From Isurus oxyrinchus (Eukaryota), in contig JANJGN010000121.1 of the NCBI GenBank assembly GCA_026770705.1, positions 1,116,001 through 1,180,000 of the forward strand: DNA of 64,000 nucleotides, in the 5' to 3' direction. The notes under the pieces were generated by a model. It saw nothing but the letters and a program-made list of their open reading frames with translations. It ran no database searches and was not told where the DNA came from. The translations under genes were made by a program, and so were the position numbers. This document shows, one piece after another, positions 8,167-62,274 of the stretch (within the stretch, counting starts at the first letter, position 1; each line of letters begins with the position of its first letter).

Positions 8167-8306
8167 TCAAACAGTCTGTCGACTTCCTTTCACTGTTTGT
8201 CTCTCCCAGACACAGACTCCAGCGATAGTGATAACCACAGCCACAAGGAATATCACAGCTTGTATTCCCAGGATCAGGATCACGTGCAGAATCTCTCCTC
8301 CACTGT
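8167..8306 (-). CDS. S2 transmembrane plus short cytoplasmic tail exon
   Basis: ttctctag|AC; (Y)SGGEILHVILILGIQAVIFLVAVVITIAGVCVWERQTVKGSRQTV*; no Tyr in the tail. Confidence 0.85.
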
Positions 8307-11300
8307 CTAGAGAACACACAGAAAGAAATCATCACTGACTCTCCGCTTTCAATCTCTCACTCTGGCTGAACAATCAAGCTTCATATCACTGCAACATTTG
8401 CTGTAATATTGACCCATCCACTGGGATTCAATGTGGAATGAATGTTTTCATTGTAAACACTCTAAGAGTGGACAATCGGAACTTTCCCCTTAGCGTGGAA
8501 CATTGGTGAGAATGGATCATTGTGCTGTTGGACTCCCTGTCCAATGTTTCTCTCCATCGCTGTGTACAGGATTGTGCTGTAGAAAATTCTGGAAACGTTT
8601 AGTGCAGGGTGGAAATCCATCTCGGACGTGTGTGCGAATCGGGCAGGATCGAGATGGACTCCCCCACGGAGTTACACCCCCCGCTTAATAAACAGTTCCA
8701 ATCTTTACCCAGAGAGAGGGGAGAATGTGGAACTCACTCCCACAGGGAGTGGTTGAGGTGAACAGTATCGATGTATTTAAGGGGCAGGAGGGTCGGTAAC
8801 CAGAGGGACACAGATTGACCAACTGGAGGGGGAGATGAGGAGAATTTGTTTTGACAGAGCGAGTTGTTGTGATCTGGAAGGTGCTGCCTGAAAGGGCGGT
8901 GGAAGCAGATTCAATAGGAACTTTCAAAAGGGAAATTGGATAAACACTTGAAGGAAGAAGATGGGGGCAATGTGGAGTGGTGGTTAGTGGATCTGATTGG
9001 ATAGAACATTGAAAGACCTGGCACAGGCTCAATGGGCTGAATGGCCTCCTCCTGTGCTGTACCATTCTCTGCTTCCATGATCTCTCCCCCAGTTAGTAAC
9101 CACTCCAGATCCCTCTTGAAGGCAACAGAGAAACAGCAACCACCACACCCACTGACAGCACATTCCCGAAGATCCCGACTCTCTGGGAAAAGATGAACTC
9201 CCCAACATCCAGCCTATTCCTGCTTCCTGGAGAGTGTAAACCCTTCCCAGAGCGCGGATGAACCTTTCAATAAACTGTATTATCAAATCTACCATTTGAT
9301 ATATAAGTTAATTTTGATGACCTTACAGCATGTGTAGCAAATTGTGAAGTGAAGTTGGCTGAAAAGCTGGGAGGTGCAAGGTTAAGCACCACAGTGCCAC
9401 CACTGGTGGGAGGATGTAAAGACAGTGTGACGTTTACATAGGATGCCCCCATTATAAATAGGGTCATTGGACATGATGGCAAAACTGAACACTGGAAAGG
9501 TGAGAAAATGAAGTAAGCTTTTCACTAACAGGAAATCCCTTCCTAAACTTCCTTATCGCTCCCTTTCTCTCAGATACACAAAAAATTTGACACAGGGCAT
9601 TATAAGGAGGAGTTAGGACAGGCAAGAGTGAGGGATTAGGAAGCTTCTTAAAGGAGGGGAGAGATACACGGAGAGGTGGGGAGTATCTGTTGGAATCTTT
9701 GTGCATGTGAGTTTCTGGAATAGACTTTGTAATTTGGATATTCTTCGATAAATATGAATGGGAACACAAATCCCAGAATCCAGGAGAACTCTCCAGTGCA
9801 GTACTGAGGGAGGTCAGGTAACTCACAGGGGAGTGTGTACTACTGTGTTAGTGTGTGAGTGTGTCTTTCTGTGTGCTCATGAGTGTGGGATTGTGTGTGT
9901 GCATGCACTTTGGGTCTGTACATTTGTGAGTGCTTGTGTGTGTGTGTGGGAGAGCATCTGAGTATATGTGTTTGGAGATGAGAGAAATATTAAAGTCTGT
10001 GTACACTCACATTCCACAGTGATGGTTATGAACCCCTCCACTGCTCCATGTTCATTCTCTGCCACACACTGATATTCTCCAGTGTCCCTGGATGTAACAT
10101 GAGGAATCACCAACCACAGCTCATTGTTGGAACTTGTTCTGTTCATTGGGACATTAAGATGTCGCCACATCAGGTTAGAAGCTGGGGAGCTCTCGACAGA
10201 GCAGATTATCACTGCAGAATTCCACTCAATTATACTGATTGATGAAGCGTTAATCATATCTGGAGAAGTAATTGAGAGATTCCGTGGAGCGTCTAAAAAC
10301 AAATACAGATCAGTTAACTTACACTGACTGTGAAGCACTTTGAAAGACACTGAGAATGTGAAAGGTGTGATGTCAATGTAGGTTCTTTCACCACATAGCC
10401 CGTAATCCAGGCAGACACTTCAGTTCAGTATTGAGGGCGTGCTGCACTGTCAGAGGGTCAGTACTGAGGGAGTGCTGCACTGTCAGAGAGTCAGTACTGA
10501 GGGCGTGCTGCACTGTCAGAGGGTCAGTACTGAGGGAGTGCTGCACTGTCAGAGGGTCAGTCCTGAGGGAGTGCTGCACTGTAGGAGGGACAGTACTGTG
10601 GGAGCACTGCACTGTAGGAGGGTTACTGCTGAGATAAAACTGCACAGTCAGAGCGTCAGTTCTGATTGACCAGTGCAATGTTGGAGGAGCACTACTGAGG
10701 GATCATTACACTATTAGAGAGTCAGTAATGAGGGAGTGCTGCACTGTAGAAGGGTCAGTGCTGAGGAGGCAAACATGCTGTTATGTGTGTACTATAGGCC
10801 TCCTGTGATAATGTGGAGTGCCAGGTACCTTTAAGAGAATACAAGTGGATAAACCATGTGACAGTACTGACCAATCACTGGACAGTGTGGGCCACTGGTT
10901 AACTGTAAGTCTAGAGCTGGAGGTGGCTGTGGGAGCAGGCAAGGATTTAGTGCTCTGCCCTCTGTTACAATAAATAATCAGCTTGTTCTAATGTCGGTCT
11001 CTCTTGGTTATTGATAGCGAGCATCAGCTAAGAATAACTCAACAGGTCTGGCAGCTTCGGGGGAGAAGAAAAGAGTTGATGTTTCGAGTCCTCATGACCC
11101 TTCGACAGAACTGAGGTCATGAGGACTCGAAACGTCAACACTTTTCTTAGTGCAAGATGGAAATCCATCTCGGACGCGTGTGCGAATCGGGCAGGATCGA
11201 GATGGACTCCCCCACGGACTTACACCCCCCGCTTAATAAACAGTTCCAATCTTTACCCAGAGAGAGGGGAGAATGTGGAACTCGCTCCCACAGGGAGTGG

Positions 11301-14300
11301 TTGAGGTGAGTAGTAGCAAATTGGGAAGTGAAATTGCTTGAAAATCTGGGAGATGCAAGGGTTAAGTGCTACCGTGCCACCACTGGTAGGAGAGTGTAAC
11401 TACAGCGTGATGTTTACATAGGCAATCCCCATGATGAACAGGGACATTGGACATCATGTGCAAAATGGGCTCTGGAAAGGTGGGAACATGATGTAAGCTT
11501 TTCACCAACAGGAATTCCCTTCCTAAACCTCTCCACCTCTCTCTTACTCTCAGATACTCAAACAATATTTCACACAGATTCACAGAAGGAGGAGTTGGGA
11601 CAGATGCCTGGTCAAAGGGTTTGGTTTGAAGAAGATTCTTCAAGGGAGAGAGAGAGTTGGAGAGGCAATCAGTATCTGTAAGTATCTCTGTGCATCTGAG
11701 TGTCTAATAGAATTTGCAATTTCCATGTTCTTCCAGAAATATGAATGGGAACACAAATCCCAGAATCTACGTCAACTCTCCGATGCAGCACTGATGGAGG
11801 TCAGGTAACCCACGGGGGAGATGTGTTTGAGTGTGTTAGTTTGTGAGTGTGTCATTGTGTGTGCTCATACATGTGGGATTGTGTGTCTGCAGGTGTCTAT
11901 TTAGGTCTGTATATTTGTGTGTGTTTGTGTCATGATTCAATCTGAGAGAGATGTTGAAGTCTGTGTACACTCACGTTCCACAGTGATGGTTATGAGCCCA
12001 TCCACTGGTCCATGTTCATTCTCTGCCACACACTGATAGTCTCCAGTGTCCCCGGATGTAACGTAAGGAATCACCAACCACAGCTCATTGTTGGAACTTG
12101 TTCTGTTCATTGTGATATTCAGATGTCAGGGCAGGACTCAACAGACAGATCGCAGTTTTACCAACAGAAAGTGAACAACAATTTATACTTGATGGGAAGA
12201 GAGTGCTGATTGGTTGGCAAGTGGTCACTGATTGGAGGAGGTGTTGCCATGGAAAATAATGTGTGCGAGGTGTAAAGTTAAGACAGCTTGTCTCTTCATT
12301 CAGCAGTAATCAAATAAAGATCAGTTAACTTCTATCGACTGTGAAGCACTTTGAGAGGAATGAGAATGTGGACACTGAGAACAGGCTGCACTGTCAGAGG
12401 GTCAGCGCTGAGGGAGTGCTGATGTAGAATGAAGGATATCTCAACTTACATTGCACAGTTAGTACGAGGGTCTGCTCCGATGAAACAGATGGATATCTCA
12501 CTCTGCAGCTGAGAGTGTGTCCGTGGTGTTTGAGTGATGGGATCAGGGTCAGAACAGAAGTATAGGTCAGAGTGACACCATGCTGAGTTACAGTGTTTGA
12601 GACTGATCCAGGTACGTCAGTGGGAATGTCCCAGGTTAAGACAGGTGCTGCTGTTCCATTGCACGTTGTGTTGAAGGTGCAGCTTACATCCACACGCTTT
12701 CCTGCAATAATTTCAGCAGGGAATATCGTGGGTTTATCTGTGAAATCTAACAGACAGAGAATGGATCCTTTTAGAGAAATATAACGTGAAGCATCAGTTC
12801 AAATAGAAATCACAGTCCCACAAGAGAAAGCACTTTTACAAGGATGATATCAGAACTGAGAGGTTACAACGATCAGGAGAGAATTTCCTGCTTTGAGACT
12901 TTGGTGTTTCTGTCTCTCAGCTTAATACACGTTCACTCCGAGACACTTGAACTGATAATAGTGGGTGAGGGTGGTGGAGCAGACCAGAGTTTGGAGTGCA
13001 CTACCCCATCAGTCCCTCAGCAATCTGGGCCATTTATTACTTTGCAATTTGTGGGAGATTGCTGTGCACAAATTGGCTGCTGTGTTTCCCACTTTACAAC
13101 AGTAACTACAATTCAGGAATCAGCTCATTGGCTGTGAAGTGATTTGGTCCATGCTGAGATGGTGAAATGTGCTATAGAAATGTGAATATTTCTTCTATCG
13201 ATATGTCAGACTTCGAGACAGGATTAGAGAGATCGGTGCGAGTGGATAACCTGATAACACTGATGGACACAGTCAATACATTTAATCATTGATATTAAAG
13301 TGAGTATTAGATGTTGCTTTAGGACTGAACTGGAAGCTATCACCAGGTTATTGAGAATCAGACAGTGTGTTATAATAAGCTGTGTTTTGTGTTAATATGT
13401 AAACGGCACAGTTTGTGTTATTTCCCATTGAGTGTTGAATGTGAATTGTTGAGTAATTATAACACAGCACTTACCAGAAACATGAAGCTGGGTTACAGGA
13501 TAGTAGCTGTATCTATTTCCGCTGTCAAATTCTATTCTGAAAAAATAAGGTCCTGCATCTCCCCATCTGATGTTATTTATAATCAGGGAACAGTCGCCAT
13601 CTTTCAGGTCTCCAGACAGCCGGGTCCGATGGTGGAAACGTGGTAACTCATGACTGTGATCCTTGGAGTGAAAGGCTATAGACGATGTTCTCCATTCCTC
13701 ATTATTAAACCAGACTCCACCTCGCGGTTGGTTTTCCAGACACAATGGATAACTGTAATGACATGGAATCTGTACACACGAACCTTTCTGAGCTGTCACC
13801 TCTCGTGGAGTGTCACCTTTCCACTCTTGTGAGGGTTCAGCTGGGGAGAGAAATATCAATATTTAACTCTGGATGGTTTGTGGATCCACTGAACCCGATA
13901 TTTACAGATGTGGCTGAATTTGGAGGATGGTCAATACTGAGGAGAATGGCAACAAATTATTTTGGCAGGAAGAATAGTAAAACAGAATATTATTAAAATG
14001 GAGAGAGGCTGCAGAATGCAGTACAGAGGGATCTGGGTGTCCTGGTACATGAATCACAGAAAGTCAGCATTCAGGAACACCACGGAATGAGGAAGGCAAG
14101 TGGAATGTTGGCCTTTATTGCAAAGGGATGGAGTATAAAAGGAGGGAAGTCTTGCAACAGCTGCACAGGGCGTTGGTGAGATTGTAACAGGATCATTGTG
14201 TACAGGCAGTTCAGAGAAACTTCACTGGGCTGATTCCTGGGATTAAAGGGTTTGTCCTGTGAGGAAATGTTGAGCAGGTTGGGCCTGTATCCATTGGAGT

Positions 14301-17300
14301 TTAGAAGAATGAGTGGTGACCTTATTGAAACATATCCGATTCCGAGGGGGCTTGACAGGGTGGATGCTGGGAGGATGTTTCCCCCTCGTGGGGGAATCTA
14401 GAACCAGGGAGCACAGTTTCGGAATGAGGGCTTTCCCATTTAAGACTGAGATGAGGAGGAATTTCCTCTCTCAGAGGGGCACTAGCCTGTGGAATTCCCT
14501 TCCCCAGAGAGCAGTGGAGGCTGGGCCATTGAATAGACTCAAGGCTGAGTGAGGCAGGTTTTTGATCGACAAGGGAGTCAAGGGTTTGGGGGACAGGCAG
14601 GAAAATGGAGTTAAGGCCACAACCAGATCAGCGAGAGCAGGCTCGAGGGGCCGAATGGCCTGCTCCTGTTCCTATTTCTTATGTTCCTACATTCTTACCT
14701 TCTTAAAATATTAAAGCTGCAGAATAAACATGCAAGTGAATGACCCGCTCGACCCACCTTCCATCTGGGGGTCCCATGGGGAGGACCCTTCCTGAGCCAG
14801 ATCCACCAGCCAACATGGTCTAGATCCGTGCACAGGAGACACGGGTTGTGACAGGCCCTGTCTGTCCAATGGCTGGCTTTCAGCTGCCAAGGCCAGAGTA
14901 GTCCTTGCTAAAACTGGCTCAGGACAGGCCAGGACCCCTGTGCAGACCCCCTCCAGCGCTGCAGCCTCTGTACAAACCCCTCATGCGCTTGTGGAGAGAC
15001 ACAAACAAGGCTGCACATTACCCAGGAGAATCCCCTCTACGGACTAAGGGGCTGACTCATCACCTTAAACTCAGCAAATGAGGAGGCTCTCGCTCGGTAT
15101 CGGGGCTTGGCATTCGCTCAATAAAAATAATCAAATGACATTTTGGTCAGAAATCTAAGGAGGTTGTACATTCCCTCAAAAATAAGACTCGATCTGGGGT
15201 CGAGGGTCAAAGGGCAACAACTTATATTTACACAACAACTTTAACATGACCAATCACCCCAAAGTGCTACACAGGAGCGTCATAAAACAAAGTATGTCAC
15301 CCAGACACATGTGGCGATATTAGCGACAGCTGACCAAAAGAGGTCGGTGTTATGGAGAGATAGAGAGAAAGAGACAAAGAGACAGAGAGAGAGAGAGATA
15401 GGGAGAGGATTTGGGTGGGAATTCCAGAGCTTAGGGTCCCAGGCAACAGAAGGCACGGCCGCCAATTTTGGAGCGATAGCATCTGGTGATGGTCAAGATT
15501 CCGGAATTGGAGGAGTGCAGTGATCTCGGGGGGTTGTAGGGGCTGTACTTTGTACAGAGGCTGTAGTGAGGCTACAGAGGTAGGAAAGATTGGAGGGGCT
15601 GTAGGAGTTTACAGAGCCAGGGAGGGTTGTAGGGGCAGGATGGGGTTACAGATATAGGGAAGGTTGGAGGGGCTGGCGGAACTTACAGTGAAAGGAAGGG
15701 TTGTTGGGGCAGGCTGGGGTTACAGAGTTAGGGAACGTTGTTGGGTCTTGAGGAGCTTTGAGCGAAAAGGGGATTGTAGGGACTGTTGGACGTTAAAGGA
15801 TAAGGGAGGCATTAGGGGCATGAGTAGGTTACAGAGACAGAGGGTTTGTAGGGACTGGAGAAATTTACAGTGAAAGGGAGGCTTTAGGGGCAAAAGATAG
15901 TTACAGAGATAGGGAGGGTGGACGGGAATGGGAAATGTTATGGAGATAGGGGGTTTGTAGGTACAGGATTGGGTTACAGAGATAGGGACGTTTGTTGTGG
16001 CTGGAGGAAGTTACAGAGATAGAGAATGCTGTAGGTACTGGAGGAGGTTATCAAGATAGGGAGGGATGTAGGGACTGGAGGAGGTTATCGAGATAGGGAG
16101 GGCTGTAGGGATTGGAGGAGGTTACAGTGAGAAAGAGTGCTATAAGGACTGGGGGAGGTTATAGAGATAGGGAGGGCTGTAGGAACTGTAGGAGGTTATA
16201 GAGATAGGGAGGGATGTAGGTACTGGAGGAGGTTATAGAGATAGGGAGGGCTGTAAGGACTGGGGGAGGTTATAGACATAGGGAGGTCTGTAGGGATTGG
16301 AGGAGGTTATAGAAATAGGGAGGGATGTAGGTACTGGAGGAGATTATAGAGATAGGGAGGGCTGTAGGGACTGGAGTTTATAGAGATAGGGAGGGTTGTA
16401 GGGACTGGAGGAGGATACATAGATAGAGATTGCTGTAGGGACTGGAAGGGGGTTTAGAGATAGGGTTTGTTGGAGTGGCTGGAGAATGGTGCAGAGAAAG
16501 GGAGGGTTGTTGGAGCTGGAGGAAGGTTCTGAGATAGGGGTGGTTTCTGGTCACTGAAAGAAGTTACAGAGATAGGGAGGGTTGTAGGGGCTGGCGGAGG
16601 AGGAGGAGGAGATTACAGAGATAGTGAGGAAACAAAGATGAAAATTTGGACATTGAGACTTTGCTTGACCAGGAGCCAGTCTCGGTCATCGAGCAGAGCG
16701 GGTGATAAGGGAATGGGACTTGGTGTGAGTAAGGACGTGGTCAGCAGTTTTGGATGGCCTCAAGTTTATGGAGTGTAGACCGTGTGTTGGAACAGTCGAG
16801 TCTGGAGGTAATGAAGGCGTGGATGAGGGTTTCAGCAGCAGATGAGCTGAGACAGGGTGAAGTCGTACGATGTTACGGAGGTGGAAATAGACGGTGTTAG
16901 TGAGGGCGCAGATATGAGGCCGGAAGCTCATCTCAGGATCAAATGGGACAACAAAGCTGTGAACAGATTGGCTTCAATCTCAGAGAGCTGCCAGGGAGAG
17001 GAATGGAGTTGGTAGCGAGGGAACAGAGTTTGGAGTGGGGAATGAAGACAATGGCTTCAGTCTTTCCAATATTTAATTGGAGGGAATTTCTGCCCATCCA
17101 GTACTGGATGTCGGATAAGCAGCCTGATAATTTAGCAGCAGTGGAGGAGTCGAGAGAGGTGGTGGTGAGGTAGAGCTGGGGATCCTCAGTGGACAGGTGA
17201 AAACTAATACTGTTCAGATGATGCTGCAAAGCCATTGCAAGTGATTCTCTGGCTACGATGAGATGGATAAGAATGGAGCCAGGGGAGAGCAGTCCCACCC

Positions 17301-20300
17301 AGCTGGACGACAGTGGAGAGGTGTTGGAGGAGGATGGTGTGGTCGAGCGGGTCAAAGGCTGCAGACAGATCGAGAAGGACGAGGAGGGAAAGTTGACCTT
17401 TGTCACAGTCACACAGGATGCCATTTGTGACCTTGATAAGAGCTGTTTCAGCACAGTGGCTGGGGTGGGAACCTGATTGGAGGGATTCAAACATGGAGTT
17501 CCGGGAAAGATGGGAACGGATTCGGGAGATGGAAACACGTTCAAGGACTTTGGAGGGGAAAGAGAGGCTGGAGATGGGACAGGGGTTTACACGGACAGTG
17601 TGAGGGGTGGAAGGTGTAGTGGGGAGGAGATACTTCACTCAGCGGGGAGGTGTCATCACCCCTCAGCTCGGTTTACGTTACAGCTATGATGTGGATTCAA
17701 TCACACACAATAAGCTCATGGATCTGGGAGCAGAAATAGACAAATCATTAAAAATAGTGACGCTGGTTAACACGGCCAAAAAACAAGCAAATCAAACACT
17801 ATTATTTCCCATTGAGTGTTGAATGTGAATTGTTGAGTAATTATAACACAGCACTTACCAGAAACGTGAAGCTGGGTTACAGGGTAATAGTTATGGCTCG
17901 GACCATTGCCAAATTTTATCGTGAAAAAATAAGGTCCTGCATCTTCCCGTCTGATGTTGTTTATAATCAGGGAACAGTCACCATCTTTCAGGTCTCCAGA
18001 CAGCCGGGTCCGATGGTGGAACCGTGGTAACTCGTGACTGTGATCCTTGGAGTGAAAGGCTATAGACGATGTATGCCATTTGTCCCTTCTCATTTTCCAG
18101 ATTCCAACACGTGTTTTCTCTAACAAATGTGATGGGTAATTGTAATTACATGGAATCTGTACACACGAACCTTTCTGTGCTGTCACCTCTCGTGGAGTGT
18201 CACCTTTCCACTCTTGTGACAGTCCAACTGGGGAGAGAAATATCAATATTTAACTCTGGATGGTTTGTAGATCCACTAGACTCGATATCCACCCCCTCCA
18301 TCACTGGGGCACAGTGGCTGCAGTGTGGACCATCTACAGGACACACATGGAACTCCCCAATGTTTCATAACGGATGGAAGAGAATCCTGGACACAGGAGT
18401 GGACAAGTTCATTCTACATTGGCTCATGGTCCTCAGGACCCTGTTTGTGCACAAGCCTGCTATCCAACAGAACTGAAGTTGGGGAAAATCCATTTGGAAT
18501 TCCACTGTCCAGGGCATTGTGTTAACTTGTTGAATTTGTTTTAAATCTAACATATAATTTTGGTCTGTTGCCTTAAATGGAGTGTAACTGGGAGTCAGGT
18601 TAATTAGGAATTTTAGGAGTTATTATAGCAGTCATTGTAGTCTTATGTATGTGCTTGAAATCTTTCATTTTGATGACAAATATTTTAATTTATTGTTTTA
18701 AATCTCTGAAAGTTTGGTGGAGTCATTGCTTCTGAATTCAGTGCACACATCTCAAAATAAATACAAATTGCAAAATCATTATGATAGTGTGACCAGGTTT
18801 CTCTCAGGGACTTGGTCTGCCTGGCACACATCACCTGCCAAGTGATAACACTGTTATAATATGCCTTTCAGGGATAGCAGCATGACATCACTCGAGGGGA
18901 AGTGTGTCATGTGATTTTTAGGAACTGGGGTTGGCTTAAGTAAGTTCTATGTGTATTTCTGTGTGTTAGGCATAAGGTCTATCTTTAAGGTATATATTTA
19001 TGTTTAATTTTAATTTGTATTTCTGTATTTGGGTGTTGAGAAAAGGGGGAGCTTGAGCTAAAAATAAGCCAGCATTCCTTTGAGGTTTTAAGACTCTTGC
19101 AGGAAGTCAAAACAAATACAAGGTGTAAGAAACTGTGCTGTTGCCTAGTAACAGTGATCCAGAGGGAAGGACCCACAGAGACCGAGAAAAACAGAAAAGT
19201 ACTTTCAGTTCTGTTGAAAGGAGTTGCCAGGAGAAGCAGCAAAGGAGCGGGACAGATAGTCAGTCCCAAAGTAAAGAAGAAGCCAAAACCATCGAGTGGA
19301 ACAGGAGAAAGGGCCCAAGAAAACCTTCTAGTCAAATCTGGAAAAGGCCCTGTTAAGTGAAGTTAAGAGTGAGGAGCAGAAGAAGGCTTCAAGCTTAAAG
19401 GGAGAAAGCAGCAGGACACAGGCCTAAAGCAAAATAGGCTTGTGAGAAGCCAGAAGATCCTAGGAGACACCACAGGTTGGTGACTCATTACTACGGCCAT
19501 GTGAAGCCATGGTGTTCCATTGACACGGCTGAGCATTGGAGAGACAGGGCGTGGAAGGAAGGCTGAATGCACGTGGCGATCCAGGGGGCAGGAACATGGG
19601 AAGGAGAGTTTGAAATAGTGAAAGTGGACCCTTGTGGAAGGTGTCTGAGTGAAAGTGTCATGTTGGAGAAGATTCCAAAGAGAGCACTTGGCTCTCTTTG
19701 AGATTGGAAACCCTCATATGGATATCTCAGTTCAGTGAGACTGGTTGGCTCACAGTGTAACAAGCGTCTGGGGTCAGATGAGGAGGGAGACATAGCATTT
19801 GTTTCAAGTGGGTTCTGTCACTTGATTTTAGAATGTGGTGTCCCTGACCACAGGTCGTCTATTGGTTTACATGGACTGTGTACTTAGTGTGAACATGAGA
19901 GTATAAGATAGCTATTGTAACTTGCGTGATCTTTATGAATCTGTATATATCTGTAAATGTATAGGTCTGGGTGAAGGAGAAATGTCATATAGTTTGTCTT
20001 TCCTAGTTTAATAAATGTTTTATTCTTTAGTTAGAAGTTCATCAGATGACTCCTGTGACTCTGTTCAGTAGCCGCACTCCACATTCCTAAATAAAAAATA
20101 AAAGTTAGGACCTATCAAGCTGAGTTCCACCCTGGGATCTGACTTGCCCAGTAGCAACATCAGCTGGGATGATAACACCATCCAGTCCAAGTTTCACTTT
20201 GGCCTGTGAGCAGAACACAGCTCACACACTTTGGCTGCAGGTGTCTCCCAGCTTTCTATCCTTGTATATCTGTTCTCATGTCCCTATTCTAAATAACTGA

Positions 20301-23300: not shown

Positions 23301-24492
23301 CAATCCCACAGACCACTGTGAGCAGTTAAAGACACCTCCAGACAAGGTAACCAGCACAAGATCTGGGTGGACCAGAAGGTTAAATCCACACTTTAGAGAG
23401 TCAAATATTCAACAGTTCCATGCACTTATGTAATTGTCAATAAATATGAACATGATATGAGAAACCGCTTGTTCCCTGTCCTTCTCAAAGATCCATTCCT
23501 GCAGCGGGAGCCTGAAGTGTTACTGATAAGAGATTTAATTTATCGGATTGTGGAATGATCCGGAACTGAAGGAAGCCATTTGGCCCATCGAGCCTGTGCT
23601 GGGCCTTTGAAAGATCTGTCCAATTAGTCCCACTCTCACCTCTGCTCTCTCCCCCACAGCCCTGCAAAATGTCCCCTTCAAGTATTTATCCAGTTCCCCT
23701 TCTGAAAGTTCCTGTTGAATCTGCTTCCACCGCCCTTTCAGGCAGTGAGTCAATGGTCTCTCTCTGAGCTGCAAAGTGATAAGTTTCAATGAAATATAAA
23801 CTCTGCAGCAGATCAGAAACAATCATGATAACTCAGAATATTTGACAGTTTTACATACAGACAGCTTTGCCTCCCTTCTCTCTATCAGTTATCTTGCTAT
23901 CTTATCGAATTTTCTAGCATGGTGAGAATGGACAGGAAGTGTGACGCTGAACTGCCTGTCTAATCTAAGAGCTTCTGTGTTGTCTTCATGGGAAATTCTG
24001 ATGAAAATCAGCAAGAGAGAAAAATTTCAGGGCATTGATATCGGAGTGCTTGCATCAGGATAGACTTCATCCCCCAGTTTTTATCCCTGCTTCTCTATTC
24101 AGCCGATCGCTCCCCTGTCACTCACTGACCTACACTGGCTCCCAGTCCAGCAATGCCTCAATTTTCAAAATCTCTTCATTGATTCCTTATCCCTCCATTC
24201 TCCATCTCTAATCCCTATCACTGTCACCTCCTCCAGCCCTGAAACCCTTTGAGGTCTCTGCTGTCCTGCAGTTCTGCTGTCAGACAGGGAGTCAATGTAT
24301 ATCAGTGAGCACAGGGGTGATGGGTGAATGGGACGTGGTGTGAGTTTGTACACTGACTCACTGCTGAATCAGTTCCCTATCAGAGCTCCATAAGAATGTT
24401 CTTTTACAAAGACTATTAGCCATAAGTCTGTCCAAGCTGACGATGTTATTACCTTGGAGAAGTGACAGGAGGAAGTAAGATTTCCCAACCAT
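8167..24492 (-). CDS. Gene model S2: short-tailed Siglec-like receptor, join 24453-24492, 17859-18227, 13475-13840, 12450-12746, 10011-10292, 8167-8306 (497 aa: SP-V-V-C2-C2-TM); alternative leader at 26644-26683
   Basis: All listed exons are open, GT/AG-bounded and phase-1 compatible; total 1494 nt. Confidence 0.7.
10011..10292 (-). CDS. S2 membrane-proximal C2-set Ig exon (94 codons)
   Basis: APRNLSI...IICSVESSPASNLMW...GEYQCVAENEHG; 282 nt, phase 1-1. Confidence 0.9.
10425..10765 (+). repeat. 33-bp minisatellite
   Basis: About 10 copies of the same unit as 5440-6723. Confidence 0.9.
11975..12127 (-). pseudogene. C2 pseudo-exon (5' half and acceptor lost)
   Basis: HLNITMNRTSSNNELW...TITVE with intact donor; the upstream part is replaced by unrelated sequence with an in-frame TGA. 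Confidence 0.8.
12450..12746 (-). CDS. S2 Siglec domain-2 C2-set exon
   Basis: FTDKPTIFPAEIIAGKRVDVSCTFNTTCNG...SCRVRY; extra BC-loop Cys typical of Siglec D2; 297 nt, phase 1-1. Confidence 0.92.
13475..13840 (-). CDS. S2 V-set exon V2 (essential Arg present)
   Basis: GSCVQIPC, GDCSL and DAGPYFFRIEF: Siglec B-E disulfide pattern, no F-strand Cys, Arg codon 13536-13538; 366 nt. Confidence 0.92.
13900..14690 (+). mobile_element. CR1 LINE 3' fragment
   Basis: Decayed RT end, FKTEMRRNFLSQR, and GGGGCCGAATGGCCTGCTCCTG...TTCTTATG tail. Confidence 0.88.
15525..16625 (+). repeat. ~37-bp purine-rich minisatellite at an L2 3' end
   Basis: Unit GAGATAGGGAGGGCTGTAGGGACTGGAGGAGGTTATA, about 29 degenerate copies. 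Confidence 0.85.
16640..17600 (-). mobile_element. L2-type LINE RT fragment
   Basis: AETALIKVTN...LLVLLDLSAAFDPLDHTILLQ; LQLNIGKTEAIVF. Confidence 0.88.
17859..18227 (-). CDS. S2 V-set exon V1 (essential Arg replaced by Thr)
   Basis: Open 369-nt phase 1-1 exon; DAGPYFFTIKFGNGPSHNY; ACG at 17920-17922. Confidence 0.88.
18520..20176 (+). mobile_element. Adjacent solo-LTR-like repeats
   Basis: TGT...ACA-bounded segments (18519-18849, 18852-20176) with AATAAA; related sequence at 500-1212 and, inverted, at 43100-43290. Confidence 0.5.
20617..23400 (+). mobile_element. Decayed Ty3/Gypsy element (gag, protease, integrase pieces)
   Basis: KIDTGASTNI aspartic protease motif; WPGMNNDLEVVVGKFEACQ integrase zinc-finger region; SNSLAE*MMHTVKS core; many stops. 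Confidence 0.8.
24453..24492 (-). CDS. S2 proximal signal-peptide exon MVGKSYFLLSLLQ
   Basis: ACAATGG Kozak context, 40 nt, AAG|gtaat donor. Confidence 0.85.
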
Positions 24493-24565
24493 TGTCCACT
24501 CCCAGATATGCCTTTAGCTTCTGACTCTTAAACTGTGAAAGAGAAAGGAGTTAATGAGACCTCAC

Positions 24566-25083
24566 CTCTTGTCCGACAGCTCTCAAGAGATCAGAACTGC
24601 TTTTAGACAATGTCTTCACAGACTAATTTGGTTCTCTGTGGGATGATAGGTGCTCTGCAGAGAGTTAAAAAGCTGTAAAAAAATAAATCAGTGAAGGACT
24701 TGCATTTCTATAGCACCTTTCACCACCTCAGGATGTCCCAAAGCTCATGTCCCTGCTCTTCCCTCATCCTTTGAGCTAGAAAGATGTTCTGTACAACAGA
24801 CCTGAGCCTCACACCCTGATCTTAATAATCAGTAGAAATCTTTCAAAGGCATCAATCATTGGAATCTGTCTTTATAAAGTCACAACATCAACAAAGGATG
24901 GTGTTGGTGGTGGAAGTGAATTCCAATCGTTCCGTTACTTACCCAGGACCTGTCCGACTGCTCGCCTGGGGAGGAACTGCCCACACGCTCTGCTTGGGCT
25001 GAATGACCTCTTCCTGTGCTGCTCCCTCTGTGTGTTTAATTAGAAAGGGTGGATGTGTCACTGTGAGACAAAATGAGGAAGTT
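24566..25083 (-). promoter_or_regulatory. S2 proximal leader: UTR exon 2 (24566-24654), exon 1 (donor 24943), PU.1-type site 25070-25083
   Basis: Paralogous to 4692-5209 with splice sites conserved. Confidence 0.7.
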
Positions 25084-25312
25084 GGATCAAAGTGACAGAG
25101 CAGCTCCTGTTTTGAGATGCTGGTAAACTGTTAACCGTTTGTGTCCTGACCCTGTGGTGATATTTCTGCTCACAGGTGGACAGTCATTGACCAGGAGTTT
25201 CTCCTTTGGGTCAGTGGGTTTCACAGCCAAATTCAGGGGGTCAGAACATTGTGGGGTTCAAGACCCGATTCAGGGGACGTCTGCCCCACACAGTAGACTG
25301 AAACTCCCCAGT

Positions 25313-25527
25313 GTCAGTACTGAGCAAGTGCTACACTGTTGGATGGTCATTACTGAGCGAGTGTTTCACTATTGTAAGGTCAGTACTGAGGGAGATCTCC
25401 ACTGTTTGAGGGTCAGTACTGAGGGATTGCTGCACTGTCAGAGGGACATTAATCAGGGAGTGCTGCAATGTTGGAGGATCAGTACTGAGGGAGTGCTGCA
25501 CTGTTGGAGGGTCAGTATTAAGGTGCT
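25313..25527 (+). repeat. 33-bp minisatellite (degenerate)
   Basis: About 6 units. Confidence 0.8.
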
Positions 25528-25679
25528 GATTTACAAGACAGGACAATGGATTAGGAGCCCTCAGAACTCCCCCCATTATCACCGTCATGAATCACTAATT
25601 AGCCTAACATTCCTGTCTGCTCTTCAACACAGCTGATTGGTTAATCTGATTCAATCTGATTGGTGCACTTTGTATGTTC

Positions 25680-25858
25680 ATTGTCTAAGGAATCTCTTTG
25701 GATCCTCATTGTCTAAGGAATCTCTTTGGATCCTCATTGTCTGAGGAATCTCTTTGGATCCTCATTGTCTAAGGAATCTTTTTGGATCCTCATTGACTAA
25801 GGAATCTCTTTGGATCCTCATTGTCTATGGAATCTCTTTGGATCCTCATTGTCTAAGG
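25680..25858 (+). repeat. 28-bp tandem repeat x6
   Basis: TTGTCTAAGGAATCTCTTTGGATCCTCA; three copies also at 60385-60473. Confidence 0.9.
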
Positions 25859-26643
25859 GATTATTTCTGATCCAAACCCCATATTGTTGTATTGTTGATT
25901 CCGATGCAGCATTGTAGACTGACTTGTCCCCAAGCTCAGCGCTGACCCTACTCCAGCAGACACTGTGAAACACACTAACAAAGTGCCTCTAGCCTGAGCT
26001 CTGCATGTGTCGAGAGAAAGACAAATATACAAACTGAATATTGACCCATTTACACACGGACAGCTTTACCTTCCTTCTCTCTTTCAGTTATCTTGCTCCC
26101 TTATTGAAGTATCTAGCAAGGTGAGAATGGACAGGAAGTGTGACACTGAACAGCCTGTCTATTCTAGGAGCTGCTGTGTTGTCTTCATGGGAAATTCTGA
26201 TTAAAATCAGGAAAAGACACAAATTTCATTCCTTTGCTATCAGAGTCCAAGCATCAGGATAGACTTCATCCCCCAGTATTTATCACTGTTTCTCGACTCA
26301 ACACCTCACACCCTCTGCCACTCGCTGACCTGCACTGGCTCCCAGTCCAGCAGAGCCTCGAGTTTAAGACTCTCATCCTCAATTTCCATTCCCTCCATTC
26401 CTCTTCTCCAATCACTTTCTCCTCCAACCATGCAAACCTCAAAGTCCTCTGCTCTCCTCCAATTCTGCTGTCAGACAGGGAGTCAGTGTATATCAGTGAG
26501 CACAGGGGTGATGGGTGAATGGGACTTGGTGTGAGATTGTACACTGGCTCACTGCTGAATCTGTTCCCAATCAGAGCTCAATAAGAATTATGTTTTACAA
26601 AGGTGATTAGCCATAAATCTATCCGAGCTGACAATGATATTAC

Positions 26644-26683
26644 CTTGGAGAAGTGACAGGAGGAAGTAAGATTTCCTGATCAT
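26644..26683 (-). CDS. S2 distal (alternative) signal-peptide exon MIRKSYFLLSLLQ
   Basis: ATG at 26683, 40 nt, AAG|gtaat donor. Confidence 0.8.
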
Positions 26684-26749
26684 TGTCCACTCCCAGGTAT
26701 TTCATTGGTTCTCAAGCTGTGAAAGAGAAATGAGTTAACGAGACCTCAC

Positions 26750-27267
26750 CTCTTGTCCGACACCTCTCGAGAGATCGGAACTGCTTTTAGACAATGTCTT
26801 CACAGACTAATTTCATTCTCTGTGGGATGATAGTTGCTCTGCAGAGAGTTATAAGGCTTTAAGAAAGTAAAACAATGAAGGACTTGCATTTCTATATCAC
26901 CTTTTACCTGCTCAGGACACCCCAAAGCTCATGTCCCTGCACTTCCCTCATCCCTTGAGCTAGAAAGATGTTCTGTACAACAGACTTGAGCCTCACACCC
27001 AGATCTCAATAATCAGTAGAAATCTTTCAAAGGCATCAATCATTGGAATCTGTCTTTATAAAGTCACAACATCAACAAAGGACGGTGTTGGTGGTGGAAG
27101 TGAATTCCAATCGTTCCGTTACTTACCCAGGACCTGTCCGACTGCTCGCCTGGGGAGGAACTGCCCACACGCTCTGCTTGGGCTGAATGACCTCTTCCTG
27201 TGCTGCTCCCTATTTGTGTTTAATTAGAAAGGGTTGATGTGTCACTGTGAGACAAAATGAGGAAGTG
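26750..27267 (-). promoter_or_regulatory. S2 distal leader: UTR exon 2 (26750-26838), exon 1 (donor 27127), PU.1 site 27254-27267
   Basis: Paralogous leader cassette with AAAATGAGGAAGTG intact. Confidence 0.7.
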
Positions 27268-27374
27268 GTTAGTACCAAGTTAGAAAGCAACTCTTTGCCT
27301 CACACAGTTAGAAAACTGTTAACCCTTTGCGTGCCAAGAATGTGGCTGAAGGGCCATCGACTGTTCACATGCAA

Positions 27375-29473: not shown

Positions 29474-29590
29474 TTATAAATTCCCATAAACAGAATCCTC
29501 AGCAAATTCACAGTTTGCGTAAAGATCATCATCTGTATCAGGATTGACTCCGCGGTTAGATTTCATTTCCACATCCTTCTCATCTTTCTT
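29474..29590 (-). CDS. S3 terminal cytoplasmic exon with two YxN motifs
   Basis: tttctattacag|AAG; KKDEKDVEMKSNRGVNPDTDDDLYANCEFAEDSVYGNL*; not in the ORF track. Confidence 0.75.
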   Translation of the reverse strand, partial: KKDEKDVEMKSNRGVNPDTDDDLYANCEFAEDSVYGNL

Positions 29591-29686
29591 CTGTAATAGA
29601 AACAGAAATGATCAGAGTGACAATCAGAGTGATCAGTGTTTAGTATTATTGATCCAAATCGAAAATTCCACCCACAATAGATACAT

Positions 29687-30282
29687 TAATTATTGATACT
29701 GAACAGGGTTTGATTATTGATACTGAACGTGGTTTGATTATTGATACTGAACGGAGTTTGATTATTGATACTGAACGGGGTTTGATTATTGATTCTGAAC
29801 GGGGTTTGATTATTGATACTGAACGAGGTTTGATTATTAATTCTGAACGGGGTTTGATTATTGATTCTGAACGGGGTTTGTTTATTGATTCTGAACAGGG
29901 TTTGATTATTGATTTTGAACGGGGTTTGATTATTGATACTGATCGGGGTTTGATTATTGATTCTGAACGGGGTTTGATTATTAATTCTGAACGGGGTTTG
30001 ATTATTGATATTGAACGGGGTTTGGTTATTGATACTGAACGGGGTTTGATTATTGATTCTGAATGGGGTTTGATTATTTATTCTGAACGGGGTTTGATTA
30101 TTGATTCTGAACGGGGTTTGATTATTGATACTGAACGGGGTTTGATTATTGATTCTGAACGGGGTTTGATTATTGATTCTGAACGGGGTGTGATTATTGA
30201 TTCTGAACGGGGTTTGATTATTGATTCTGAACGGGGTTTGATTATTGATTCTGATCGGGGTTTGATTATTGATTCTGAACGG
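29687..30282 (+). repeat. 24-bp minisatellite, about 25 copies
   Basis: Unit TTGATTATTGATTCTGAACGGGGT. Confidence 0.95.
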
Positions 30283-30415
30283 TGTTGGGTGTGAGTTTGG
30301 TTGGGTTTGGGAGTGACTGTATAAAACATTGCAGATACAGGACTGGAGCAGCCATATCAATAACCAGGCTACTGGAGCAGCTGAGAGGCTGGGGATCCTG
30401 TGGTGTGTGACTCAC

Positions 30416-30520
30416 CTGATTCCTCAAAGCCCAACCACGCTCACAGTTTTCATAAACAGGACCTCGATATTCATCAACACGGTGGTTTGATTTGATTCCT
30501 GCTTTCCTCTCGCCTCTCTT
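30416..30520 (-). CDS. S3 internal cytoplasmic exon (phase 0-0) with YEN motif
   Basis: ctctattacag|AAG ... CAG|gtgagt; KRGERKAGIKSNHRVDEYRGPVYENCERGWALRNQ; paralog of exon 29474-29590. Confidence 0.72.
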
Positions 30521-30589
30521 CTGTAATAGAGATGGAAATGGACAGAGTGACTATCAACATGATGTGTATTCGGTGTTGGGTTTGATTAT

Positions 30590-30865: not shown

Positions 30866-31310
30866 CAGAAAGATGTTCTGTACAACAAACCTGAGCCTCA
30901 CACCCAGATCTCAATCATCAGTAGAAATCTTTCAAAGGCATCAATCATTGGAATCTGTCTTTATAAAGTCACAACATCAACAAAGGACGGTGTTGGTGGT
31001 GGAAGTGAATTCCAATCGTTCCGTTACTTACCCAGGACCTGTCCGACTGCTCGCCTGGGGAGGAACTGCCCACACGCTCTGCTTGGGCTGAATGACCTCT
31101 TCCTGTGCTGCTCCCTCTGTGTGTTTAATTAGAAAGGGTGCATGTGTCTCTGTGAGTCAAATCAGGAATTGGGGAACAATTGTGAAAACCCTTTCATTGA
31201 AACGTAGGGACTTAGTGTTGTGTTGTAAGCAAACTGTTAACCCTTTGTGTCCTGACTCTGTGACGTGATTCCTGTGTAAAGCTGAGCAGTCGTTGAAAGA
31301 GTTTCAATTC
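30866..31310 (-). promoter_or_regulatory. Orphan copy of Siglec promoter and exon 1 (donor 31032), without exon 2 or signal exon
   Basis: Near-identical to 24778-25070 plus upstream homology to 25125-25200. Confidence 0.75.
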
Positions 31311-31399
31311 ACTGCTCAATCCAGGTGTTGAGGTGGATCTTCTGAAGGAGCAGATGTTGCTCAGCGCTCCTTAAAAATGTGAGAGACTGAACAACGTGT

Positions 31400-31972: not shown

Positions 31973-32069
31973 TTTCTCACACACTTGAAGATGAAGAATC
32001 CACTCAGTCCAACACTCAAACAGATTCCAGCTCCAAGCAATCCTGCTTTCCATTCATTGGAATCTCGCC
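31973..32069 (-). CDS. S3 transmembrane exon (phase 1-2)
   Basis: ttttacag|GG ... AA|gtaagt; RDSNEWKAGLLGAGICLSVGLSGFFIFKCVRK; same 97-nt length as, and homologous to, the S4 TM exon. Confidence 0.82.
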
Positions 32070-33300: not shown

Positions 33301-33330
33301 ATAACAAGAGAACGTTCAATTCTGTGTAAT

Positions 33331-33589
33331 CCCTCCACTGCTCCATGTTCATTCTCTGCCACACACTGATAGTCTCCAGTGTCCCTGGATGTGACCTGAG
33401 GAATCACCAACCACAGCTCATTGTTGGAACTTGTTCTGTTCATTGGGACATTAAGATGTCGCCACGTCAGGTTAGAAGCTGGGAAGCTCTCGACAGAGCA
33501 GATTATCACTGCCGAATTCCCCTCAATTATATTGATCGATGAAGCGTTAATCATATCAAGAGAATTAATTGAGAGATTCTGTGGTGTGT
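33331..33589 (-). pseudogene. S3 C2 pseudo-exon
   Basis: C2 ORF open to HGAVEG, but the final strand and donor are missing; 13-nt polypyrimidine tract deleted relative to the homologous acceptor at 10293-10310. Confidence 0.8.
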
Positions 33590-33705
33590 CTGATCAGTTA
33601 CTTACATTGACTGTGAAACACTTTGAGAGACCCTGAGAATGTGAAAGGTGTGATATCAGTGTAGGTTCCTTCACCACAAAGCACTTAATTCAGTCAGACA
33701 CTTCA

Positions 33706-34102
33706 GTTCAGTACTGAGGGAGTGCTGTACTGTTGGAGGGTCAGTACTGATGGAGTGCTGCACTGTTGGAGGGTCAGTACTGAGGTAGTGCTGCACTGTC
33801 AGAGGGTCAGTACTGAGGGAGAGCTGCCCTCTTGGAGCGTGAGTACTGATGACCTGCTGCACTGTTGGAGGGCAGGTGCTGTGAAAGCTGCACTGCCGCA
33901 TAGTCAGTACTGAGCAAGTACTTCACTGTCAGAGAATCAGTACTGAGGGAGTGCTGCACTGTTGGAGGAACAGTACTGAGGGAGTGCTGCACTGTCAGAG
34001 GGTCAGTACTGAGGGAGTGCTGCACTGTCGGAGGGTCAGTACTGAGGGAGTGCTGCAATGTCGGAGGGTCAGTAATTAGGGAGCTCTGCACTGTTGGAGG
34101 GT
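33706..34102 (+). repeat. 33-bp minisatellite
   Basis: About 12 units, same intronic position as 10425-10765. Confidence 0.9.
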
Positions 34103-34104
34103 GA

Positions 34105-36083
34105 TAAGACCATAAGACCACAAGACATCAGAGCAGAAGGAGGTCATTCGGCCAATCAACTCTGCTCCGCCATTCAATGACACTATGGCTGATCTGACAA
34201 TCCTGAACTCCACTTTCCTGCCTCTTCCCCATAGCCTTTGATTCCCTGACTGATTAAAAAACTGTGTATCTCAGCCTTGAATATAATTAATGACCCAGCC
34301 TCTGCAGCTCTCTGCAGTAAAGAATTCCACACATTCACTACCCTCTGAGAGAAGAAACTCCTCATCTCTGTCTTAAATGGGTGACCCCTTACTCTGAGAT
34401 TAAGCCCTCTGGTCCTAGACTCTCCCACAAGGGGAAACAACCTCTCAGCATCTACCCTGTCAAGCGCCTAAGAATCTTATATGTTTCAATAAGGTCAGCT
34501 CTCATTCTCCTAAACTCCAATGAGTACAGGCCCATCCTACTCAACCTCTTCTCATATGAAAATCCCTCCATTACTGGGATCAACCTAGTGAACCTTCTCT
34601 GGACTGCCTCCAATACCAGTACATCTTTCCTTAGATAAGGGGACCAAATCTGCTCACAGTATTCTAGGTGTGGTCTAACTAGTGCCTTGTACAGTTTTAG
34701 CAAGGCTTCCCTATTTTTATACTCCATTCCCTTTGAAATAAAGGCCAACATTCCACCTGCCTTCCCTATTAACAGCACTGATCCCTGTGGCAATCCAGAG
34801 GTTGCCATCCTGAAAATGCCCCCCTTATCTCAACTCTCTGACTTCTATTAGTTCGCCGATCCTCTATCCATGCTAATATACTGCCCCCAACACCATGGGC
34901 TCTTATCTTATTAAGTAGCCTTATATGTGATACTTTACTGAACGACTTTTGGAAATCCAAATATATTACATCTACTGGCTCCCCTTTATCTATCCTGTTT
35001 GTTACCTCCTCAAAGAATTCTAATAAATTTGTCATGCATGATTTCCCCTTCATGAAGCCTGTGTGTGATTAAATTATGCATTTCTAAATAGTCTGCTATT
35101 ACATCCTTTATAATGGACTCTAACATGTTCCCAATGACAGATGTTAAGCTCACTGGCCTATAGTTACCTGTTTGTTGTCTCCCTCCCTTTTTGAATATGG
35201 GTGTTACTTTGGCAGATTTCCAATCCTCTGGGACTTGCCCAGAATCTAAGGATTCTTGGAAGATTAAAACCAGTACATCCACTATCTCTGCATCTACTTC
35301 CTTTAATATCCTAAGATGCAACCTATCAGGTCCAGGGGACCTATCAGACTTGAGACCCATGAGTTTCCCTAGTATTACTCTCTAGTGATAGTTATTGTAT
35401 TTATTTCCTCTCCCCACCCCCCTTTTGCCCCTTGATTATTTAGTATTTTTGGAATGCTATTAGTGTGTTCTACCGTGAAGACTGATGCAAAGTATTTATT
35501 CAACTCCTCTGTCATTTCCTGGCTCCTCATTATTATTTCCCCAGCCTAGTTCTCTAAGGGGCCCATGTTCACTTTGGTCTCTCTCTCCCTTTTTATATAC
35601 TTAAAGAAGCTTTTACTGTCCTTTTTTTAATAATTTGCTAGTTTACATAGTTTTCTGCCTCTTTATTTATTTTTTGGTCATCTTCTGTTGGTTTTTAAAA
35701 CGTTCCCAATCCTCTGGCTTACCACTAACCATATTGCATGGTTTCTCTTTCAATTTGACACACACCTTAACTTCTTTGGGTAACCCAGGTTGGTTTATTC
35801 TCTTCCTACAATCCTTCTTCCTCACTGGGATATATCTTTGTTGTGAGTCATGAGCTATTTTCTTAAAGATCTGCCATTGTTCATCCTCCATCTTTTCTGC
35901 TAAACCCCTTTCCCAGTCCACTCCAGACAACCCTGTCCTTATTCCTTTGTAATTACACTTATTTAAGTCCAGCACAGTTGCTTCCGACCCAAGTTTCTCA
36001 GTCTCAGAGGGAATGCTAAATTCTACCAGGTTATGGTCACTGTTTTCCAGGGGATCATTTATTCTGAGATCATGTATTAAACC
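34105..36083 (-). mobile_element. CR1 LINE, ~2 kb ORF2 remnant
   Basis: SPGPDRLH, GNYRPVSLTS, VDVIYLDFQK, LVRPHLEYCEQIWSPY; frameshifted. Confidence 0.93.
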
Positions 36084-61700: not shown

Positions 61701-61773
61701 TGTCCACTCCCAGATATTTCCTCAGCTTCTAACTGTGAAGTTCTGAAAGAGAAAGGAGTTAATGAGACTTCAC

Positions 61774-62274
61774 CTCTTGTCTGAATGCTCTCGAGAGATC
61801 AGAACTGCTTTTAGAGAATATCTTCACAGACAAATTTGATTCTCTGTGGGATGATTGGTGCTCTGCAGAGAATTACAAGGCTTTCAGAAAGAAAAACAAT
61901 GAAGGACTTGCATTTCTATAGCACCTTTCACCACCTCAGGATGTCCCCAAGCTCATGTACCTTGAGCTAGAAAGATGTTCTGTACAACAGACTTGAGTCT
62001 CACACCCAGATCTCAATAATCAGTAGAAATCTTTCAAAGGCATCAATCATTGGAATCTGTCTTTATAAAGTCACAACATCAACAAAGGACGGTGTTGGTG
62101 GTGGAAGTGAATTCCAATCGTTCCGTTACTTACCCAGGACCTGTCCGACTGCTCGCCTGGGGAGGAACTGCCCACACGCTCTGTTTGGGCTGAATGACCT
62201 CTTCCTGTGCTGCTCCCTCTGTGTGTTTAATTAGAAAGGGTTGATGTGTCTCTGTGAGTCAAAATGAGGAAGTT
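61774..62274 (-). promoter_or_regulatory. S4 leader: UTR exon 2 (61774-61862), exon 1 (donor 62134), AP-1 TGAGTCA (62255-62261) next to a PU.1-type site (62261-62274)
   Basis: Paralogous leader cassette; motif matches by eye. Confidence 0.7.

Follow-up and report, generated by a model that had tools for sequence, protein, structure and literature searches.

The 64,000-nucleotide (nt) stretch considered here (the window; positions 1,116,001 to 1,180,000 of contig JANJGN010000121.1 in assembly GCA_026770705.1 of the shark Isurus oxyrinchus; all coordinates are counted from its first letter) carries the immunoglobulin (Ig)-domain genes S2, S3 and S4. In the initial annotation, S2 and S4 were taken for a pair of Siglec-like receptors in which one ligand-binding head was joined to opposite signalling ends. 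It appears probable, instead, that these genes belong to a large tandem family of CD33-like Siglec genes, in which members couple a common ectodomain kit to a 3' cassette drawn from a set of three old ones, the heads have been homogenised by gene conversion and one member, S2, has been disarmed. The kit would consist of a leader exon, V-set exons (one to several), a second domain of the C2-set type (D2) and optional C2 exons of 282 nt. The genes of the window would thus be part of a paired-type receptor family and not one privileged pair.

Siglec heads and three 3' cassettes

All Ig-domain exons of the window reside on the minus strand, with none on the plus strand, and the full exons named in Table 1 are of phase 1, open (minus-strand frame 3) and flanked by canonical AG acceptors and GT donors; when read in this phase, the exon coordinates proposed initially are correct. 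The exons were searched against databases singly and were joined only for reading-frame checks. In Pfam, all three V exons match both the V-set domain and the first Ig domain of the CD22 type, the values for the V exon of S4 being 1e-13 (V-set) and 1e-11 (Ig_CD22). Among solved structures, Siglec-5 is the closest to S4 V (1.7e-15), followed by CD33, MAG, Siglec-8 and sialoadhesin. The GPYFFRIE segment of S4 V aligns with GSYFFRVE of Siglec-5, the site of the sialic-acid arginine, the segment GSCVQIPCHYSYP ... DGDCSLIINN of the window V with GLCVLVPCSFSYP ... KNCSLSIGD of Siglec-5, and S4 V shows the cysteines typical of Siglecs (C-x6-C close to the B strand, plus one Cys in the E strand). The heads are, as had been suspected, true Siglec V-sets.

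S4 appears to be an intact inhibitory member of the family. Its leader is a 100% match to the first 13 residues of Carcharodon P0012, its transmembrane (TM) exon is 97% identical to Carcharodon P0169, and the TM, cytoplasmic and last exons join in frame (...CVRKRKRAMEE...EILYANINFSKLPSGDRTVHRSEDTEYTQIRFQKN, then a stop). The claim that S4 ends in a neutral TM span followed by ILYANI and TEYTQI is borne out by this three-exon reading: the tail has the form ...EILYANI...(19 residues)...DTEYTQI, that is, an inhibitory motif of the immunoreceptor tyrosine-based type (ITIM) with a distal ITIM-like motif. The Arg-bearing V domain would bind sialylated ligands, and the two motifs, judging by their type, would recruit SH2 phosphatases when phosphorylated. 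In the first cytoplasmic exon, S4 has GTNYIAL at the place of GTSDIAL or GTRDIAL in Carcharodon and Cetorhinus; the extra tyrosine, which falls in a TxYxxL context, is specific to the species or to the copy.

S3 would be a headless copy of the third cassette, with an S4-like TM span and a tail with two YxN motifs. In comparison within the window, the stretch that separates S3 from the end of S4 holds neither a V nor a D2 exon, and the homology of the S3 C2 exon to the C2 exons of S4 stops at 33328. The view that S3 represents a third TM/tail type holds for the tail, which is distinct and has its double-YxN C-terminal pattern also in shark and ray proteins, but not for the TM span: a separate TM type was ruled out by the homology of this exon to the TM exon of S4 (76% nt identity against 46770-46969; 61-63% in amino acids (aa), by proxy via Carcharodon proteins). 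A frameshift in the S3 tail was also ruled out, as the donor of the TM exon is AA/gtaagt (not AAG/) and the three exons are in frame. The intron between the S3 cytoplasmic exons contains, at 29686-30290, a 24-bp tandem repeat (>90% identity between units) that is open in several frames and so yields long false open reading frames (ORFs). The exon reading confirms that tails of three kinds lie together in one cluster: one with an ITIM, a short one free of Tyr and one with YxN motifs.

How old are these cassettes? A HMMER search with the S4 V exon retrieved 1527 proteins at E<=0.001, 326 of them at E<=1e-10, with no exact protein match to the window among them. The closest matches are automatic elasmobranch RefSeq models named Siglec-8/10/11/12/13/14 or CD33-like, from Carcharodon, Cetorhinus, two species of Scyliorhinus, Mustelus, two of Chiloscyllium, Stegostoma, Hemiscyllium, Rhincodon, Hypanus, Hemitrygon and Pristis. 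The nearest are those of Carcharodon and Cetorhinus (85-88% in V, up to 98% in D2, 93-97% in the TM exons), so that the lineage is a shark, in keeping with the earlier assignment of the DNA to a cartilaginous fish. The TM exon with the ITIM tail and the TM exon with the double-YxN tail are found in several species, as is the S2-type exon (see below), and a single 1.8-Mb contig of Carcharodon carries all three types (XP_041037177, ITIM type; XP_041037180, YxN type; P0163, TM-Arg type). The three 3' cassettes, being common to three shark orders, appear to be old. Among Logan transcript contigs, P0191, P0212 and P0213 are V-D2-C2 Siglec-like sequences with a different short anchor (…SWKCIAALIVLAVIFICVVPVIVWAACCRNK) that has a lysine at the edge of the span and may be another activating-type cassette in another lineage.

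The membrane glutamine of S2

S2 would follow the build V1-V2-D2-(C2)-TM and end in the 140-nt activating-type cassette of the family, in which the Arg of the relatives would be the usual docking site for adaptors with an immunoreceptor tyrosine-based activation motif. Its last exon encodes SGGEILHVILILGIQAVIFLVAVVITIAGVCVW-ERQTVKGSRQTV and a stop; hence, the TM span unrelated to that of S4 and the Tyr-free tail of 12 residues, ERQTVKGSRQTV, are as initially described. The activating role that this implied is not supported by the membrane span. The exon is 78-93% identical in aa to 10 proteins from 5 other shark species of 3 orders: Carcharodon P0159, P0160 and P0163; Scyliorhinus torazame P0006, P0143 and P0152; S. 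canicula P0162 and P0164; Chiloscyllium punctatum P0020; and C. plagiosum P0200 (a word-index search with the C-terminus of P0006 gave one further protein, and a search with the whole of P0143 the remaining relatives). All 10 have Arg in the membrane span (LGIRA); S2 of the window has LGIQA, with the codon CAA (Gln) at 8260-8262. As CGA would encode Arg at this position, a single CpG transition (CGA to CAA) suffices for the change from LGIRA to LGIQA. The invariance among the relatives argues that the residue is under constraint and that its loss matters. Short-tailed receptors dock to FcR-gamma or DAP12 by means of a basic residue in the membrane span (PMC4016189; for Siglec-14 and DAP12, PMC4042635). 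With Gln in its place, S2 probably cannot couple to an adaptor. Thus, of the marks of an activating partner, the short Tyr-free tail is present and the basic membrane residue is absent: by descent, S2 appears to be of the activating-type class, without the defining feature of that class. It would be a non-signalling, decoy-like form or a copy heading to decay.

Contigs from four runs (X1-X3 from one sample, organism A; X5 from organism B; all are contigs, and their RNA nature is a guess) bear on the expression of this exon. They are RNA-like in that their depth over exon bins exceeds that over distant intron bins ten- to a thousand-fold. The joint 8307>12451, from D2 to the S2-type TM exon, is present in all four runs, and the joint 12746>13475 (V2-D2, CT..AC) in three; in addition, a loose end at 13841 marks a V exon spliced to a V2-type exon, and one at 10009 marks S4-type contigs in which a C2 exon is followed by the TM exon of S4. 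The joint 8307>12451 sits one base off the predicted exon ends, an offset that would be accounted for if the contigs read ...CAAG/ACAGTGG, with G as the final base of D2, which is also the case in S4 and Carcharodon (QDSGGE); the D2 of S2 in the window has T there. The same direct joining of D2 to the short-tail exon is seen in the RefSeq models P0143, P0159, P0160 and P0163 (…LTVQDSGGEILHV…), other models being joined via C2 exons. The S2-type exon is spliced D2-to-TM and is expressed as an exon type. Since the junction base is G and not T, this joint cannot be assigned to the S2 copy of the window.

It could be argued that S2 and S4 nevertheless form a working activating/inhibitory pair, S2 coupling despite its Gln, or the Gln being an assembly error or a rare allele. 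The open exons and canonical splice sites of S2, its membership in a conserved Arg-type cassette, the splicing and abundance of this exon type in all four runs, a dN/dS ratio (nonsynonymous to synonymous divergence) of 0.19 between S2 V2 and S4 V, which implies that purifying selection has acted, and a 310-nt contig (8298-8607) without a difference from the window all fit this notion. We consider it unlikely, all the same: CAA stands in the sole available sequence, at a position where every relative has Arg; the V domains differ at 10 residues, some of them in the C-C' and G-strand specificity regions (by inferred placement); and the junction contigs mismatch S2 at the junction base. Moreover, for receptors of the DAP12/FcR-gamma type, no adaptor is known to pair with Gln.

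The opposite case, that S2 is a silent, decaying duplicate in which the replacement of Arg by Gln was the first disabling hit and that the spliced contigs all come from Arg-bearing paralogues, strikes us as doubtful, although it has more in its favour than the T-to-G mismatch at 12450. The contigs of one sample all differ from the window at 13744, the contigs over 8254-8897 are 1.3-2.2% divergent from it, which suggests close paralogues, the transition from CGA to CAA is a common decay mutation, and the partial C2 exon (~11976-12122), together with two upstream leader modules, speaks of a rearranged locus. Yet none of the S2 exons contains a stop, a frameshift or a broken splice site, and the contig of 310 nt, which spans an exon-intron boundary, is identical to the window and has a depth far above that of distant intron bins.

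Probable gene conversion among the heads

The heads of S2 and S4 had been described as nearly identical. For D2 (98.0% nt identity; synonymous divergence, dS, 0.013) and for the 190 nt of intron beside it (97.3%) this is true; the V exons (S2 V2 vs S4 V) are 92.9% identical, with 26 nt differences, 10 of 121 residues changed, a nonsynonymous divergence (dN) of 0.040 and dS of 0.205, which is not the identity above 99% of the Siglec-5/14 grade. Identity changes along the V exon, from 88% in the first 125 nt to ~95.5% in the remainder, and continues at 98% over the 100 nt of intron beside V; in the middle of the V-D2 intron it is 82.6% in aligned columns and 59% when gaps are counted. The two heads cease to be homologous at 13890 on one side and at 12418 on the other. 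Their longest stretch without a difference (132 nt, 12758-12627) spans the intron/D2 border and was matched in 7 of 10,000 permutations (P = 0.0007). The proposal that the likeness is confined to the head rather than spread over the whole genes stands as regards the unrelated TM/tail exons, but the C2 exon of S2 (10011-10292) is also 93-95% identical to six of the seven C2 exons of S4 (the third was compared out of register and gives no figure).

A second line of evidence comes from the V domains themselves. Compared with seven V domains of Carcharodon and Cetorhinus, S2 V2 and S4 V have in common a deletion of 3 residues, along with 8 columns that none of the other rows has (NNEE---WRTSSIAF in these two vs N.(E/K)QIPW..APIAF in the others). 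Otherwise they keep different type-specific residues: S2 V2 has P3, C34 and G111 of the internal-V type (Carcharodon P0163 and the second V of Cetorhinus P0165), and S4 V has L3 and H34. The mosaic identity and the window-only deletion point to short gene-conversion tracts, of which one would extend from ~nt 122 of V into the intron and the other from the intron into D2. Such tracts would swap V and D2 among the members of the family while the 3' cassettes stay distinct.

A tree of 42 shark V domains, built by maximum likelihood, pairs the two V domains of the window with each other as sisters (support 89/82) and intermixes ITIM, TM-Arg and YxN genes within the lamniform, scyliorhinid and orectolobiform groups. 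When the D2-adjacent V of the 21 genes with known tails is considered, tail type changes 9 times in 21 rows (the shuffled mean is 9.9, and 35% of shuffles give 9 or fewer), whereas taxonomic order changes 5 times, a value reached in none of 300 shuffles. Shark V heads appear to track lineage and not tail type, which is why we speak of a paired-type multigene family, with S2 and S4 as members of a large set, rather than of one special pair. The proposal that heads are kept alike by local exchange agrees with the mosaic identity, with the deletion and its 8 columns and with the ordering of the tree by taxonomic order.

Could the same picture arise with no exchange between S2 and S4, from family-wide conservation in a slowly evolving genome and an old duplication? 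In favour of such a scenario are the 84-93% likeness of all V exons in the window, a D2 that matches even Carcharodon proteins at 94-98% identity and a dS in V (0.205) equal to the divergence of the mid-intron. We judge it improbable, however, given the drop from 97-98% in the intron flanks to 59-83% in mid-intron, the improbably long identical run, the window-specific deletion in two V domains that otherwise preserve different type-specific residues, and a tail type that is random on the V tree in spite of cassettes conserved over three orders.

Several observations, nevertheless, weigh against a homogenised family with a disarmed S2. With a V dS as high as the divergence of the intron middle, conversion of V appears to have been partial or old, and, as D2 is 98% identical in aa to Carcharodon, constraint appears to explain part of the D2 identity. 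The sister branch of the window V domains is not starred. The Gln at 8260-8262 is known from the assembly sequence alone, and the junction contigs, which have G where the D2 of S2 ends in T (12450), may stem from paralogues or from another allele.

Known paired receptors and the layout of the locus

The human pairs offer the obvious comparison. In these, conversion is limited to the segment for the first two Ig domains and the signalling ends stay different, Siglec-14 associates with DAP12, and the activating partner is often lost in humans (SIGLEC14-null) (PMC4042635). The shark genes resemble Siglec-5/14 and Siglec-11/16 in the placement of an ITIM Siglec beside a short-tailed relative, in the probable local conversion of heads and in the fragility of the activating side, SIGLEC14-null recalling the shark copy with Arg changed to Gln. 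The association of Siglec-14 with DAP12 runs through a basic TM residue. The differences are no less evident: the heads of the human pairs are nearly identical, as opposed to 93% (V) and 98% (D2) in the shark, where S2 has Gln; the human systems are two-gene pairs, whereas that of the shark counts many members, uses three cassettes and has tandem V domains as well as a C2 stalk of seven exons. With the CD33-related Siglecs of tetrapods the shark genes have in common the Arg-bearing V-set, the cysteine pattern, the C2-set second domain and a membrane-proximal ITIM with a distal [T]EYxxI about 20 residues away. S4-like tails are present in sharks and rays, with significant BLAST matches in both (rays 4e-9); matches to the tetrapod proteins in the set were not significant, so that the likeness there is at the level of motifs.

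More generally, KIR, LILR/PIR, PILR and the fish NITR form multigene clusters that evolve through duplication and exchange, their similar ectodomains being followed either by an ITIM tail or by a basic residue in the TM span and a short tail. The shark family differs from them in its ligand domain, a Siglec V-set with the sialic-acid Arg, and in its third conserved cassette, the double-YxN one. In paired receptors of the Ig superfamily, a charged TM residue goes with FcR-gamma or DAP12 (PMC4016189). The RefSeq models of other sharks are alike in having the three cassettes on one contig, V-D2-TM builds, the D2-to-TM splice and 85-98% identity per domain; they differ in the Arg of the short-tail TM span, and they are automatic predictions with borrowed mammalian names. 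Our literature search yielded no paper on Siglec pairs of sharks or cartilaginous fish and nothing usable on DAP12 in cartilaginous fish; the whale-shark genome paper has Siglecs only within a gene-family list. The shark family is, then, already visible in automatic annotation, with no description as a paired system found in the literature, and its unexpected feature is an activating-type member in which the membrane arginine is replaced by glutamine.

A more far-reaching proposition, which we offer tentatively, is that elasmobranchs have a true paired Siglec system: the ITIM, TM-Arg and double-YxN cassettes would predate the split of lamniforms, carcharhiniforms and orectolobiforms, the heads would be homogenised time and again in each lineage through gene conversion, and S2 would be a naturally disarmed copy, the counterpart of human SIGLEC14-null and SIGLEC16P. 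Paired Siglecs are known from primates and are thought to have arisen as the answer of the host to pathogens that turn inhibitory Siglecs to their own use. Should an elasmobranch family indeed follow the same logic, the arms-race design would have to be either of great age or easy to reinvent; such a family would put CD33-like ITIM/ITIM-like tails in cartilaginous fish and, should the paired system be genuine, would take paired sialic-acid sensing of the CD33 type back to the base of jawed vertebrates. The copy with Arg changed to Gln is, besides, a natural test of the role of the membrane arginine. The value of all this is tempered by the presence of the genes in automatic annotation.

Table 1. 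Exons of S4, S3 and S2 in the window
Feature	Position	Strand	Remarks
S4 leader exon	61661..61700	-	MIGKSYFLLSLLQ, donor gtaata, phase 1
S4 V-set exon	57721..58086	-	sialic-acid Arg in GPYFFRIEF
S4 D2 exon (C2-set)	56565..56861	-	Pfam C2-set_2, 8e-10
S4 stalk, seven 282-nt C2/I-set exons	48834..55584	-	Pfam Ig_3/I-set, AG/GTGAGT, open frames; exons at 55303-55584, 54336-54617, 53308-53589, 52251-52532, 51157-51438, 49897-50178, 48834-49115
S4 TM exon	46830..46926	-	GRDSSKWTVGLFTAGIMLSVFLAGIFIFICVRK; membrane span without charged residue
S4 first cytoplasmic exon	46053..46134	-	in frame with TM and last exons; tblastn match of P0157
S4 last exon	44197..44442	-	ITIM ILYANI, distal TEYTQI, stop
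S3 C2 exon	33314..33589	-	6 nt below the usual 282; weak donor gttctc
S3 TM exon	31973..32069	-	homologue of S4 TM exon; 97% aa to Carcharodon P0012
S3 first cytoplasmic exon	31032..31116	-	GSSTGRGHSAQAERVGSSSPGEQSDRSW; in frame with neighbours at canonical splice sites
S3 last exon	29477..29590	-	...DDLYANCEFAEDSVYGNL and stop; two YxN motifs 11 residues apart
S2 V1 exon	17859..18227	-	sialic-acid Arg replaced (FFTIKF); 87.0% nt to S4 V
S2 V2 exon	13475..13840	-	internal V, AEPSQEW start, Arg kept (GPYFFRIEF)
S2 D2 exon	12450..12746	-	C2-set_2
S2 3' C2 fragment	~11976-12122	-	partial
S2 C2 exon	10011..10292	-	full, optional: absent from D2-to-TM joint in contigs
S2 last coding exon	8167..8306	-	140 nt, TM and 12-residue tail, good acceptor

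The window has a G+C content of 44.5% and two runs of N. The first gap, 48358-48826, begins directly past the intact donor (GAAC/GTGAGTT) of the seventh C2 exon of S4, and on its lower side the sequence picks up again at a point homologous to 87 nt into the unit-5 intron, beside a CA microsatellite. As the C2 exons are all symmetric (phase 1-1), no reading frame depends on this gap and no exon is broken by it; additional C2 units of 1.05 kb could sit inside it, so that seven is a minimum count. The second gap (39259-39506) separates S4 from S3 and has no Ig exon in its vicinity.

Relics of C2 exons are found ahead of the S4 stalk (56275-56343, with an internal deletion), past it (a 3' fragment at ~47740-47831) and in S2 (the 3' fragment listed in Table 1); they are traces of unequal exchange between the units of 1.05 kb. 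A 33-bp satellite forms arrays in both orientations, within introns and between genes, at 5425-6725, 10425-10766, 25310-25523, 33705-34102, 37672-37893 and 44624-45843, those at 10425-10766 and 33705-34102 being in equivalent positions upstream of the C2 exons of S2 and S3. ORFs that resemble fragments of the reverse transcriptase of long interspersed nuclear elements (LINEs) lie among and within the Siglec genes (34452-35360, 42567-42989 and 17204-17638).

Copies resembling the leader of S4 are present at 4579-4618, 24453-24492 and 26644-26683; the latter two (MVGKSYFLLSLLQ and MIRKSYFLLSLLQ, respectively) have promoter-like flanks and lie upstream of S2 V1. There are also four extra copies of the first cytoplasmic exon of S3 (62134-62214, 27127-27207, 24943-25023 and 5069-5146), which are ~60-80% identical in aa to Carcharodon and Chiloscyllium proteins and keep the gtaagt donor. 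Each of them is located ~450-530 nt upstream of a leader exon, and it seems that a duplicated promoter-leader module carried the tail end of an upstream YxN-type gene along.

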